Positions 53,892-59,586 are shown, numbered from the stretch's first letter. The stretch: 64,000 nucleotides of DNA from Hyaloraphidium curvatum SAG 235-1 (GCA_025558095.1 JAIVFI010000022.1:558001-622000), one strand, 5' to 3'. Numbers and translations are program-made. Notes: generated from the letters alone by a model not told the origin.

Positions 53892-54397
53892 CGGCGGGAT
53901 CCGAGCCGCGGTCGGGAGGTCCCGTGTACCCTGCGTCTTGATTCATGTTGCTATGTGCTCGGACGCTTGCACCGTCTGCTTCCGTTCAGAGGCAAACTGA
54001 TCTACTCGCCCTACTACACTTCCTTTCCGAAAGACAATATACACAGAGCATAATAATCACGGGCTTAGGCGGACGGTCAGGTGTGCGGCCAGGCTAACCG
54101 GGCGGGCGGCCAGCTCTAACGCGCTGACCGCACAAACGCTACCCCGAAGCAACCGCCCGAACGCGGGCAAACACCCCCGCGCGGGCCCCGCCGACAGCGC
54201 AGAGCCGGACAGCTGTCGCGCGCCGAGCTCCCCGGGCCGGCGCTTCGCGCCGCGGAGGCCCGGTGCGCGAGCGGCGCCGCATCGCCCGCGGGCAAACGCT
54301 GACAGGTCGCGCGCGCGGGTTCCCCCGCGGTCCTCCCGCGCCGCGGTCCTCCCGCGCCGCGGACCCCATAGATTCGGCGGACCCCATAGATTCGCGC

Positions 54398-57300
54398 ATG
54401 GACACCCTCGCCGCCGCGGCGGCCGCGCTGGAGCCCGTCGCGGGCCCAGGTGCCGGCGGTGACGTCGACTCGACCCCCGCCCCGCGCGCCGCGCCCAAGC
54501 CGCGCAGGCCCGCCGCCGGAGCCGCCCCCGCCCGGGAGACGGGAGAAAGGAAGCGGAAGAGCGCGGGGGAGGGCGAGGGCGGCGCCGCTGCGGGCCCCGT
54601 CGCCTCCGCCGGCGGCCTGCAGGGCCCACCGAAGCGTCGGATCGCCGCGACCAAGCCCCCGTCGGCCAAGGCGCCCGGCGAACCGGGGCGCAAGCAGCCG
54701 GCAGGCATACGCAAGAAGGATCTGGCATCGGCCGGTGCTCCGGCAGCCCGCGGAGGTGCGGCGGGCGCCCCGGACGCGGCGGGCTCGGGAGGCAGCGGAG
54801 CGACGCGCAGGAGCAAGGTTGGCGACGCCGTCGTCCTGCACGAGGCGTCCCCGGGCGGGAATGATGCCGCTGCATCCGGTGCCGGGGCTCGCGCTCGCGG
54901 AGGAGGTGCTGGGGGCGACGGCGACGGCGCGCGGACCGGAGCTCCGGCTGGAGGGGCGCCGGTCAAGGCAGGAACCCCTCCCGGCGGTCAGGAAGCGCAG
55001 AATCCTGGCGGCCAGGGATCAGATGGATCCGCTCCCGCGGCAACGGCTGCCTCGGTCCCTCCGGCGGAGGCTCCGGCTCGACCGACGGCGCGGAAGCCAA
55101 AGAGGAAGCGCGCCGCCGAAGACGACGGGGATGCGGAGCGAGCCGGTGCCGAGCCCGGTGCAGACGGCGCGGACGGAGGCTTGGGCCCCGCCGAGCGCAG
55201 CGAGCTCGAGGAGGCGCTCCGTTCCGGCCCCGCCGTGTCGGACGACCTGGAGCGCCGGGCCGCCCTCGCCGCGGACGAGGCCTGGAAGAACAGGGAGAAC
55301 AGCGGGACCACGGACAGCATCTACGCCTCGCACTTTGAGCACTACAAGCTCTGGTGCGGCGGGAACGGCGTGGAGCCCTTCCCCGTCCTGCCGGCCAAGG
55401 CGGTGCTGTTCGCCGACTGGACGATGAAGCGGCCGCGCCTCAAGTCCGGCGTGAGGAAGGGCTCGAAGAAGGGGCGCACGGCGGACCAGGGCCCAGCAAC
55501 CCTGGCGGCTTTGGAAGAGCTGTTCGTCACGGGCACTCGGATTGGGCCGGGTGTGGTCGGGGGCGTTCTCAACGCCCTCGAGTTCTTGCGCAAGGCCACG
55601 GCCATCGACTTCCCCGAGGCCGATTTCCCGCAGGCCCACCGCCCGCTCCGAAGCGATCCTCGGGTGACGCGGATCGAGAAGCTCTCGAAGCAGAACAGCG
55701 CGTCGCGGCAGGCAAACTCGGAGGAGATCAAGTCGGCCGGCGGCGCGTCCAAGACCTACAACCAGCAGCAGTACCGCGACGTCGCGGACTACCATCTGCT
55801 GCGAGCGGCGAACGGCAAGAAGGCTGCCGTCACGCCGCAGGAGGCCGCCGCGGGGGTGCGCAACCGGGCACTGCACTTGATCTCGGGATCCTTGGCGGAT
55901 CGGTCGTCGGACGTGCGCCCGACCGCGCTCTCGGACGTGCAGTTGCGCGAGGTGACTCTCCCAAAGACTGATCGCATTGTGGAGGTGGGCAGTCAATCTC
56001 CGTGGGTCGCGTGAAGCTTCCTAACGCTTGTTTGCCCGCCCAGCTCGGCGTCATCCTCGACAACAGCTCGAAAACAAACAAGGAAGGGGAGATCTTCGAG
56101 AAGGCGATGTTGCGGAACCCGGACGTCCGGATCTGCCCCATCAACTCGCTCGCCCTGCACAGCTATGCAACGTACCACATCCTACAGGAGCGGCCCCCGG
56201 AGCTTGCCCCCGTTTTTGACGCCAAGAGCCCGCCGTACGGCCGCAGGGACTGGTACAAGATCCCGCTGTTTCCTGGGAACGGAGAGAAGGGGGAGATCGC
56301 GTACAAGAGTGGGTGGCCGCGGACTTCCCGCCTCTCCGTGAACTCACGGGCCCTTCTCCGCCGCAGCGCACTGGAAAGCAGTCACGGGAGCACACACGGC
56401 GCTCGGGCTCTTCGACGTCACGAAGAAGACCCACGCTGGGCGCTCGTACGCTCCGCGTCGCGCGCATGCCAAGGACTGTCCCGACGAGGACATGATGGCC
56501 CTGGGGCGGTGGAGCAACGGCAAGATCTTCCGGGAGCGATACTTGACGTCGATGCCGTGGCCGGCGGTCATCGCGACCGCCGACTCCGACGCCTCCAACC
56601 CGGCGGCCTACTACGTCCCGCGTGCGCAGCTCGGTGGGTGCCGTCGAATTGACACCTGGCGAGGCGCCACTGACGCAGCACTCCGCGATCGATCGCGTCG
56701 ATCCTGCAGAGCCGCCTGCGGAGCTCCAGCAACGCATCATGCCTTGGGCAGACGCCTCGCTCGCTGCGTACAAGGAGCGCCTCGAACTGGACCCGTCCAA
56801 GTACCGCGACCCGTGCTGTGAGATGACCTGCAAGAGGTTCATTTTGGAGCGGAAGGTGCGGGGCGTCCCTTTTCCTCGGTCGTGCGTGCATGCGGGCGGT
56901 TGCTGACCACCCTGCTTTACTCTTGCAGATCCTCCTTCAAGACGCCCCGGAGCTCATCAACCATTTCGCCCCCGAGTTCAGCAAGGACGGCTACGATGCG
57001 CACGCGGACGACGGCCTCCCCTTCGTCTTCAAGACCGAGCTCTTCCTCTCCACCGAGTACCTGGTATGGCACCGCGAAGCGCTCGCCAAGATCGGCGAGC
57101 TGCGCGAGGCCGTGCGCCACGTGGCTGGGCCGAAGGAGTTTGTGAACGCGATCGTGCCGCTCTTTCAGCAGCAGAACCTACTCTTCGGGCGCCTCGAGGA
57201 GGCTGTCTCGCGCAAGCCGGACGGGGCGTCGGCAGACCTGCGCACCGCGGTGCGCGAGGACGTGCGCGAGGACATGACCGTCCTCTACAACACGCTCGTG

Positions 57301-58227
57301 GAGACCCTCGACTCCACCATGGAGCAGGCCATGGAGCATCTGACCGAGACGGTCACGGACGTGGTGCAGGACGTGTTCCGCAAGGCTGTGCCTTCCTTGG
57401 CGGCGGCCCTGCAGGCCCAGGTGCCGGCCGTCTCGGCCGGAAGCCCGGGCGTCTCCACCTCCTCCCCTTCGGCCCCGGCCCTCGCCAATCCATCGGCAAC
57501 GGAGCTCCCGGTGCTCCTTCCCCGCCCGCAGCCCGTTTCCCAGGACGGTGGCGCCGGCCTGGGTGTTCCCCGCCCCCTGCTTTGCTTCCCCCGGCCTCCG
57601 AGCTTTCCCCCCTCCGGAAGCCCGGTCTCCGCCCTTGCTCCCCAGCCCAGCACCTCTGCAGCTCCCTCAGAACCTGCCCAGGGACCGGCAGCTGCCCCCT
57701 CGGCCGGCGCTGCGGCGGCAACGGGCCTCGACGCCGCCCAGGCGGAGAAGCGGGCGCTGGAGGCGTCGCGGCTGCGGCAAAAGTACGGAGCCAAGCTCCA
57801 GGGCATCGACATTGTTTTCCACAACGGGCAGATGGTACCGGCGTACGAGCTTGCCGCCGGGAAGCTGTCGATCGAGGACGCCTACAACGAGATCTACATC
57901 GGGCGCGATGGCAAGATCTCGGTGGAGGAGCTGGACAGGGACTTTGGGCCCAAGTGGCGGCGGAACAACAACCGCATCCAAACCGAATACGGAAGGCGGA
58001 AAGCGATCAAGGAGGAGCTGGAGAAGATCCGGCGCGGCCCGCCCGCAAAGTCGCCGACGGCGGCGCTCCGGGCCCTCAAGGACAGGTTCACGGACAATGG
58101 GGCGGAGCTGACGGCGCGGCAGGTGAGCGACCGGCTCCAGAAGGCGGCGCGGGACGCCGCCAAGGCTGCGAAGGAGGCGGCGGGCGGGGCGGGGACGGGT
58201 GCGGCCGCGCAGGGGGCTGCGGCGTGA
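54398..58227 (+). CDS. Crypton tyrosine recombinase with NDC10-II-like core and C-terminal GCR1_C domain (1187 aa spliced)
   Basis: Introns 55985-56043, 56309-56366, 56634-56709, 56856-56928 give one continuous frame; ADRSSDVR, SKTNK, CPI, KTHAGR, LGRW, RERYL, ILLQDA; GCR1_C-like SIEDAYNEIYIG..SVEELDRDFGPKWRR..YGRRKAI. Confidence 0.9.
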
Positions 58228-58527
58228 CGGAAGGCGGGTCTTCTTGGGACATGGGGCAGTAGCGAGGTAGCGGAGGATCTTTTCGTTCTTTTCCCTGTGT
58301 TTGGTTCGGTTCAAGAATTGTAGGCCTCAGAAATCCGGTCAATCCAGTCCAGTCTGCCAGCGGGCGGCGCCCGCGGGCTCGCAAAACCTCCAGGAGGCCG
58401 GCAAGGCCGCCAGTCGCGGGCACCCTGCGCTGGCAAGAGCCGCGCTGGGCTCGTTGTCCGATTTTGCGGTCCGTTGCCGCGCTGTATCGCGGGGGTAGAG
58501 GGGTGGCGGCGAACCCACGGCACTGCC

Positions 58528-58858
58528 CCCCCACATCCCCCTCCCGCCGGCGGGAACCCCCGGAAAATCCGAACGGCCAGCGAGTTCAATACCGCGGGCA
58601 CCTCGAACGGGGATTTTTCCGGCCCTTCGACCCATCCATCCCGTGTTTCGCCTCCGGAAGAACCGGCGCCCGACCGACGGTCCCCCACATCCCCCCTCCC
58701 GCCGGCGACAGCTCCCGGAAAACCCCAACGGCCAGCGAGCCCAATGCCGTGGGCACCTCGAACGGCGATTTGTCGAGGCTTCGACCCGTCCGCCCGGTGT
58801 TTCGCCTCGAAGAGCCGGCTTCCGCCAGACGGCCCTCCCCATCCCCCCTCCCGCCGCC
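58528..58858. repeat. Tandem repeat, about 154-bp unit, about 2.2 copies, in the Crypton 3' non-coding region
   Basis: CCCCACATCCCCCTCCCGCCGGCG..AACGGCCAGCGAG..GGGCACCTCGAACGG recurs 154 bp apart; a third partial unit begins near 58835. Confidence 0.85.
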
Positions 58859-59357
58859 CTCCGGTCCCTCTGGGAGCTGGTCCAAACCGGTGCAGCAACG
58901 GTGCCCGGCCTCGGCGCGACGCACGCCGGCCGGCGGACCCGGCGGCGCCGCGGGAACACGGCACCTCCCGCGGGGGGTTCCCGCCCGCGGCCGCAATTGC
59001 GGGCTCCCCCACCGCCACGCCCGCCGCCGCGGGCCCGCACGCCGGGGCGCCGCACGGCCCGACCGGTGCCGGAGTCGCAGCGCCGCGCGGCGGCCCGGGG
59101 GGAGCGGCGGTGCGGCGCGCGGGAGCGCGGCCGGCTTCGCCCCTCCGCGGTCGGGGCCAAACACCGCCGCCGCCGCGGCCGCCGCCGACCACGGCGCCGC
59201 GCAGGCGGATCCCGCGGCCGCGCTGCAGGCCGGGCGGGCGGGGGGCGGCGGCCGTGGGGCAGCGGGGGAAAGGCGGTCCGGCTCCGGGGGAATGTTACAC
59301 GCCCTGGGTGGGTTCGAGTCTGGCGGGGCCAATTAGAGCTGACCGCGGAACTGGCCG

Positions 59358-59383
59358 GGGAATGTTATGCGCATAACATTCCC
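59358..59383. repeat. Perfect 26-bp palindrome GGGAATGTTATGCGCATAACATTCCC
   Basis: Exact self-complementarity; extra half-site GGGAATGTTA at 59288-59297. Confidence 0.95.
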
Positions 59384-59586
59384 TGCGGTCAGGGCGGCTA
59401 ACGATCGGGCGGTCAGGTCTAGTTCAATTAGGCGGCGGTCAGGGGTTTGGGGGGCTGACCACGGTGCACACACACGACTCTTCCGTTCGGAATCGGCGGC
59501 CGATTGCGTCACGTGACCGCCACATCACCCTCCTGCAAACCGTCCCCCCGGGAGAAAACCGCTCCTCCAACACCAGAAGAACATCC

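Follow-up and report, generated by a model that had tools for sequence, protein, structure and literature searches.

Within a 64,000-nucleotide stretch of the Hyaloraphidium curvatum SAG 235-1 genome (GCA_025558095.1, JAIVFI010000022.1:558001-622000; hereafter the window, with positions counted from its first nucleotide), the interval 54045-59475 is very probably a real, full-length CryptonF-type transposon, an assessment that covers its proposed ends and circle-integration mechanism as a whole. As described in the parts of Kojima and Jurka (PMC3212892) that we draw on, CryptonF elements combine a tyrosine recombinase (YR) with a GCR1_C domain and carry short terminal direct repeats. The element has every defining CryptonF feature that could be tested. 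Several copies lie at unrelated loci (C22, which is the window copy, C2, and C21/C49) and share the same ends. The terminal repeats, of 3-4 bp, reflect identity with the target rather than a target-site duplication, and a 2026 paper describes Crypton repeats as microhomology and not as duplication (PMC13465315). There is no reverse transcriptase, DDE transposase, or long terminal repeat, and the predicted protein has both the catalytic residue set and a C-terminal GCR1_C domain. The demonstrated evidence comprises the gene model and its splicing, the protein domains, the conserved catalytic positions, a census of copies, exact ends at three loci, the junction between head-to-tail units, and a paralogous empty site that the flanks rebuild base for base.

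Copies, ends, and insertion sites

The gene is not single copy, as the assembly holds seven units that are 98.7 to 99.8% identical (the window copy on C22, one on C2, three in tandem on C21, and two in tandem on C49) together with a truncated C2 copy. A whole-element DNA search listed only the C2 copies: the full copy at 98.7% identity and, 7 kb upstream of it, the truncated copy at 94-95%, equivalent to 54105-57994 of the window. The C21 and C49 units surfaced in protein searches of the genome: C21 showed three, at intervals of about 5425 bp, and C49 showed two, and local alignment resolved them as head-to-tail arrays 99.4-99.8% identical to the window copy. The initial annotation had proposed using both ends as genome queries, and this found further copies with shared boundaries; each end alone returned precisely the seven units and nothing further. 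Because C49, a 28-kb contig, is collinear with C21 at 99.8%, it is best read as the C21 locus assembled with two units instead of three, and the number of independent loci is therefore three (C22, C2, and C21/C49). The difference between three and two units reflects either copy-number heterogeneity or an assembly artefact. The middle C21 unit has more than 10 single-base insertions or deletions and may be poorly polished.

Full units diverge from each other by 0.2-1.3%, and the C22 and C2 copies are the only two whose frames are open in the assembly. Positions 57642, 57898, and 58617 are among those that set the window copy apart. An in-frame 15-bp deletion (55564-55578) and a 34-bp deletion in the 5' arm (54343-54376) mark the C2 copy, and the array units share a 5-bp deletion in intron 3 (56681-56685). 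The boundaries of the element and its arrays are as follows.

54045-59475, plus strand: Crypton element, corrected; 5431 bp including one ACAC copy, the same unit as in the C21/C49 arrays
54031-54044: left flank, the first 14 target-motif bases AAGACAATATACAC; ACAC at 54041-54044 is the left crossover repeat
59467-59475, plus strand: terminal CA tract CACACACAC; ACAC at 59472-59475 is the right crossover repeat
59476-59477: right flank, GA, completing the 16-base target motif AAGACAATATACACGA
C21:156539-172816 (3 units) and C49:7612-18461 (2 units): tandem arrays, one locus in two assemblies

These ends follow from the copies themselves. Copy-to-copy identity between the window and C2 units begins at 54043 and runs as far as 59475, and the flanks outside these positions are unrelated at all three loci. 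In the arrays, the right end is joined to the left end with a 4-bp overlap, and the junction reads ...GGCTGACCACGGTG(CA)5GAGCATAATAATCACGGGCTTAGG.... The element ends, ACAGAGCATAAT... and ...GGTGCACACACAC, do not repeat each other in either direct or inverted orientation. The flanking crossover repeat is ACA at C21 and C2 and ACAC at C22, with one copy present within the tandem junction; the crossover falls in ACA(C) inside the terminal (CA)5 tract.

When the element is excised in silico from the C22 and C21 flanks, both loci give AAGACAATAT-ACAC-GA, rebuilding a repeated target with zero bases gained or lost. The target 16-mer, AAGACAATATACACGA, has 9 exact matches in the genome and 22 at two or fewer mismatches; the reversed control gave 2. 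This motif forms the fixed end of a dispersed repeat family, here called family R. At least 35 copies of R begin at this end and reach lengths of 33 to more than 800 bp, and across the fixed end from them the DNA is unique. Judged from its variable truncation pattern alone, which is that of 5'-truncated non-LTR (non-long terminal repeat) retrotransposons, family R may be LINE-like (resembling long interspersed nuclear elements), and no Pfam domain was found on its open reading frames within 2.3 kb of the fixed end. The fixed end reads AAGACAATATACACGAAAAGCG..., and the flank beyond it is often GAA/TTC-rich.

The join at the two loci can be followed base by base. The C21 flanks restore 23 bases of the R end exactly, the 24-base target sequence being AAGACAATATACACGAAAAGCGAA. 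Between fixed landmarks, the joined-ends site spans 10 bases (CACACACACA) and the target 4 (ACAC); the left and right junctions span 3 and 11 bases at C21, and 5 and 9 bases at C22. The total is 14 at either locus, so that the join is conservative with a 2-base register shift between events, and attL + attR = attP + attB holds at C21 and C22 (3+11 and 5+9 = 10+4). A conservative join of this kind is expected when a tyrosine recombinase acts inside a short core of identity. The C2 target, GATTT-ACA-TATG, occurs nowhere else in the genome and lies inside a local tandem duplication, and no empty site for it was found in the genome; ATWTACAY is common to all three targets. The motif has about 22 copies in 32 Mb, and two of the three loci were hit at the same position within it, a coincidence that chance cannot account for.

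The local tandem duplication at C2 is of about 38 bp (right flank C2:573846-573910), and its unoccupied second unit, CTGTCTGATTTACATCTTTATG, resembles the deduced empty site. Imperfect direct repeats flanking the copies were considered and set aside: those around the C2 copy are explained by the local tandem duplication of the target, and those around the C21 and C22 copies by the repeat-family end and the GAA-rich insertion context.

The gene is copied together with two non-coding arms of about 0.35 kb and 1.25 kb.

54045-54397, plus strand: 5' non-coding arm; four CGGYCAG (54074-54130), TTAGGCGGACGGTCAGG at about 54066-54082, and short direct repeats at 54328-54392
58228-59475, plus strand: 3' non-coding arm; five CGGYCAG (59339-59442), TTAGGCGGCGGTCAGG at about 59429-59444, and no recognisable second gene

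At the ends, CGGYCAG occurs 4 times in 57 bp and 5 times in 104 bp; over the rest of the window its frequency is about 1 in 1450 bp. Both arms also contain a 16/17-bp repeat, TTAGGCGG(A)CGGTCAGG, which brackets the crossover in the joined form, and GCGGTCAG-11-CTGACCAC adjoins the crossover; a perfect 26-bp palindrome lies at 59358-59383. The CGGYCAG arrays and the 16/17-bp repeat are candidate binding sites of the element's protein. Two to three tandem units of about 154 bp, 78-87% alike, occupy 58522-58870 and are kept in all full copies. Pfam searches of the exons and of seven long open reading frames in the arms returned no further family, and with no Pfam match on these long frames no second gene is recognisable in the arms.

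The recombinase gene and its transcripts

The element encodes a single gene of five exons.

54398-55984, plus strand: exon 1; 529 codons, about 290 low-complexity basic residues followed by a SAM-like N-terminal domain and R502 (55901-55903)
55985-56043, plus strand: intron 1; 59 nt, GT..AG, absent from an RNA-derived contig
56044-56308, plus strand: exon 2; NDC10_II Pfam match at 56050-56283 and the conserved GKTN lysine K539
56309-56366, plus strand: intron 2; 58 nt, GT..AG, absent from the RNA-derived contig
56367-56633, plus strand: exon 3; predicted tyrosine recombinase catalytic core, with H640-x-x-R643, W666, and Y676
56634-56709, plus strand: intron 3; 76 nt, GT..AG, absent from the RNA-derived contig
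56710-56855, plus strand: exon 4; supported by exon joining and the RNA-derived contig
56856-56928, plus strand: intron 4; 73 nt, GT..AG, absent from the RNA-derived contig
56929-58227, plus strand: exon 5, including the stop codon; GCR1_C DNA-binding domain at 57868-58035

The initial annotation had proposed that removal of four introns yields an open frame of 1187 amino acids with five recombinase motifs, and exon joining bears this out: the joined exons comprise 3564 nt, or 1187 codons plus a stop, with zero internal stops, and ADRSSD, SKTNK, HAGR, GRW, and RERYL were all found in the spliced frame. The introns are short with GT..AG borders, in a host genome of about 68% G+C. Pfam and homology searches were run separately for each exon. 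Two domains scored above their curated cut-offs, NDC10_II on exon 2 (E=4.4e-7) and GCR1_C (PF12550) on residues 314-369 of exon 5 (E=6.7e-9, 36.4 bits against a cut-off of 23).

An exhaustive search of representative proteins with the last 240 residues of exon 1 returned 43 proteins at an E value of 0.001 or lower, the best of them 34-40% identical, and across the N-terminal 240 amino acids the closest database proteins are just 30-40% identical. Among 10 homologues scanned with Pfam, 6 carry both NDC10_II and GCR1_C, 3 carry one of the two domains, and 1 carries neither. The N-terminal part is similar to Phage_int_SAM_1 and DUF3504 clusters in the ESM Atlas, and a sequence search of the PDB gave no match. 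The exon 1 core and exon 5 likewise matched nothing in word-index protein searches, but these nulls carry no weight as absence because the length window of the search leaves out full-length relatives.

Catalytic columns were judged by adding single-exon translations to an alignment of 12 distant homologues. In this alignment, R502 falls on the conserved (F/L)RG arginine, K539 on GKTN, H640 and R643 on THxxR, W666 on GxW, and Y676 on a conserved tyrosine, so that, as aligned, the R-K-H-R-W-Y catalytic set of tyrosine recombinases is preserved. The R-to-W and W-to-Y spacings are 23 and 10 residues, respectively; those of Cre are close to these values.

Three sequence runs of one organism cover the window, all in the form of assembled contigs. 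In one of these runs, X3, a 942-nt contig skips 55985-56043, 56309-56366, 56634-56709, and 56856-56928 exactly. Because this one contig skips all four proposed introns, run X3 holds RNA-derived sequence and the introns are real, as the initial annotation had supposed. The 942-nt contig differs from the window copy by about 4%, and a companion contig of 3546 nt departs from the element at 57994 and continues into sequence that flanks the truncated C2 copy. The depth of this contig alone accounts almost exactly for the depth summed over 55046-55618. From the differences of about 4%, the run-off at 57994, and the match in depth, the transcripts come mainly from the older, truncated copy. The 3' arm, which is missing from the truncated copy, is the sole part covered by contigs 99-100% identical to the window.

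Comparison of the window and truncated copies gives a synonymous divergence (dS) of about 0.10 and a ratio of nonsynonymous to synonymous divergence (dN/dS) of 0.31 overall and 0.21 in the recombinase core, which argues that the protein was constrained while the two lineages diverged. The truncated copy (C2:557579-561410) lacks both ends. One base is deleted within its low-complexity N-terminal region, and its final exon reads on for about 50 codons into the adjoining sequence. In run X3 the transcripts of this copy are abundant and properly spliced; it could be a decaying copy expressed from a neighbouring promoter, or else represent an early step towards co-option.

Proposed mechanism and alternative explanations

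In the proposed mechanism, the recombinase would join the two ends into a circle with the junction ...CACGGTG(CA)5GAGCATAATAATCACGG..., and the ACA(C) at the end of the circle's CA tract would recombine with ACA(C) in the AT-rich target ATWTACAY. Integration would be conservative and without target-site duplication, as in Goodwin's Crypton model, in which a Crypton circle reportedly forms and then integrates. Arrays would form head to tail on integration of a multimeric circle, or of a circle at the end of a copy already in place, and the head-to-tail junction lends indirect support to excision and re-integration. We infer the circle, the role of the arm motifs, and any current mobility; the element may be active. 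A more specific proposal, which we advance only tentatively, is that this Crypton homes to the fixed, 3'-like end of the LINE-like repeat (ATAT-ACAC-GA) and amplifies as arrays through circles that integrate into resident copies.

Several observations weigh against the overall reading of a transposon moving in this way. Coding-region coverage in run X3 comes almost wholly from the truncated copy at 94-95% identity, and a single base, equivalent to 57150, is missing from each of the five tandem units, which puts exon 5 out of frame. The assembled contigs of the three runs, which break at repeat ends, contain no go-back or skip joint and gave no sign of a circle, an excision footprint, or an empty allele. 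Reported Crypton microhomologies are 4-6 bp, and the 3-4 bp found here lie at the lower limit of that range; no core site with dyad symmetry was found across the crossover. With three independent loci only, support for the target rule is thin. Lastly, just 3 target-motif bases lie to the right of the element at C22, and for that reason an aberrant event at C22, carrying 12 flank bases from a C21-like donor, is conceivable.

An alternative that bears on present activity only, and not on the nature of the element, is that a once-mobile, now dead element was multiplied by segmental or tandem duplication and ectopic recombination. The frameshifted tandem units, the intact copies with almost no coding-region transcripts in run X3, and the lack of a circle or empty allele among the assembled contigs all fit this account. 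However, the copies occupy three loci with two identical ends and unrelated flanks and carried no flanking DNA with them, insertion at the repeated target was conservative to the base, and the units differ by as little as 0.2-1.3% and retain two open frames. We consider a dead element unlikely on these grounds.

A second alternative concerns the ends. The initial annotation had the element run from the CACGG at 54058-54062 to the CACGG at 59460-59464; under this account CACGG would be a 5-bp crossover, and the extra 15 and 11 bases shared between copies would belong to a long specific target. CACGG is indeed present at both places, and it resembles the CACCG end and CAYCG target reported for CryptonF-1_cRei of Chlamydomonas (in the portion of PMC9977147 used here). 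Nevertheless, copy alignments end away from CACGG, with identity continuing 15 bp to the left of the left CACGG and 11 bp to the right of the right one, and the true ends lie 13 bases (left) and 11 bases (right) outside the pair. Four head-to-tail junctions (two on C21, one on C49, plus overlapping blast ends) keep both extra stretches, and the repeating unit therefore includes the 26 bases between the two CACGG. Neither of the sequences predicted from these ends was found in the genome: the circle junction CTGAC-CACGG-GCTTAG is absent at two or fewer mismatches, and the empty site CATAATAATCACGGTGCACACAC (TAATAAT-CACGG-TGCACACAC) is absent at three or fewer. In contrast, the flanks outside 54045 and 59475 rebuild a motif with 9 exact occurrences. 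Ends at CACGG are thus highly improbable, and annotation should use the corrected coordinates, 54045-59475, with CACGG as an internal sequence.

That the locus is instead a duplicated host gene of the Ndc10/Cbf2 or Gcr1 kind, that is, a domesticated Crypton recombinase, is scarcely credible: Pfam does name the catalytic domain NDC10_II and the tail GCR1_C, but the gene is multicopy, sits at different loci and in head-to-tail arrays with its arms copied along, and appears from the alignment to keep all of the catalytic residues that, in the portion of PMC3212892 used here, are described as not preserved in Cbf2 and Gcr1. The initial annotation's reading as a full-length Crypton-type mobile element is upheld by the near-identical copies at three unrelated loci and the arrays, by the conserved catalytic positions, and by the dN/dS of 0.2-0.3 relative to the older copy. 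Two other classes of element were rejected: DIRS/Ngaro, as no reverse transcriptase or RNase H domain and no split direct or inverted terminal repeats are present, and Starship, as there is no DUF3435 match and the element is 5.4 kb with a single gene and no large cargo.

Relation to known systems and to other Crypton genes

CryptonF-1_cRei of Chlamydomonas reinhardtii was seen moving, with an end of CACCG, a target of CAYCG, clean excisions, and a rise in copy number (Lopez-Cortegano et al. 2023, PMC9977147, from the part of that report drawn on here). Both elements have one gene that combines a tyrosine recombinase with GCR1_C and a short end motif that approximates the target, and insertion of CryptonF-1_cRei is intergenic and gene proximal; the window copy likewise lies between two genes. 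A copy number that rises despite an excision-type model is a further likeness. The two differ in the motif itself, as the 5-bp CACCG/CAYCG of CryptonF-1_cRei is replaced here by ACA(C) in (CA)5 and the AT-rich target ATWTACAY, and in the head-to-tail arrays found here, which that part of the report does not mention in connection with Cryptons. Mobility was observed directly for CryptonF-1_cRei and is only putative here, and the likeness is drawn from descriptions of the elements rather than from their protein sequences.

In common with fungal CryptonF elements such as Crypton-Cn1 (Goodwin et al. 2003; Kojima and Jurka 2011), as characterized in the relevant part of PMC3212892, the element has introns in its gene, combines a tyrosine recombinase with GCR1_C, and lacks terminal inverted or long direct repeats; its short terminal direct repeats, like theirs, are taken as recombination substrates. 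Most fungal CryptonF elements are described there with 6-bp terminal repeats, whereas those found here are 3-4 bp, and the species table in that part of the paper does not include the host phylum, Monoblepharomycota. The NDC10_II-type fold family and the GCR1_C domain also link the element to the CryptonF-derived Ndc10/Cbf2 and Gcr1 of Saccharomycetes. These are single-copy host genes with a degraded catalytic site, in contrast to the multicopy element found here, which has repeat-bearing arms and, as aligned, keeps R-K-H-R-W-Y.

Parallels also exist with lambda-type att systems: conservative crossover in a short identical core with attL + attR = attP + attB, repeated arm-type motifs away from the crossover, and tandem multimers with attP-like junctions. 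Unlike those systems, the element is eukaryotic and nuclear, has introns, lacks a dyad-symmetric core site, and has a core identity of 3-4 bp. Its distinctive features are the ACA(C) core in a CA tract, the AT-rich target at a repeat end, the head-to-tail arrays, and the host lineage.

A literature search found no paper linking the genus Hyaloraphidium with Cryptons and no report of Cryptons in Monoblepharomycota. The present element places a young CryptonF family in this early-diverging fungal lineage. Cryptons are rare and poorly understood; in the library searched, we found one direct observation of mobility (Chlamydomonas, 2023) and no biochemical system. The family supplies an open recombinase gene, defined ends, a natural joined-ends sequence, and many unoccupied target copies, which is the material that testing Goodwin's circle-and-integrate model needs. 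If the tentative proposal of homing and array formation is true, the genome would hold a full complement of natural recombination sites (the joined-ends site in the arrays, left and right junctions at each of three loci, and 9 or more empty targets), and a eukaryotic tyrosine-recombinase transposon could be reconstituted directly in vitro.

Other Crypton-like genes are present in the same genome. A distant paralogue with 37% identity, KAI9016786.1 (P0003), is a 1007-amino-acid protein of Hyaloraphidium curvatum with a GCR1_C domain that is annotated as a hypothetical protein. It is encoded at C22:417.8-420.7 kb, where 53 of its 67 15-mers match exactly and the others fall at exon joints or beyond the locus examined. 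Distant paralogues with 26-37% identity to the exon 1 core were located at C22:418773-421222, which is the KAI9016786.1 gene, and at C2:518056-518709 and C2:638274-639599. Given KAI9016786.1 and the two further paralogues on C2, the genome has several Crypton families. Outside the element, a 34-bp stretch in the left flank (53985-54018), which matched neither a tRNA nor an Rfam family, recurs at C34:481599, C42:415741, and C13:724492, where it continues for about 20 bases (ACAACCTAATCGGACCGACG).

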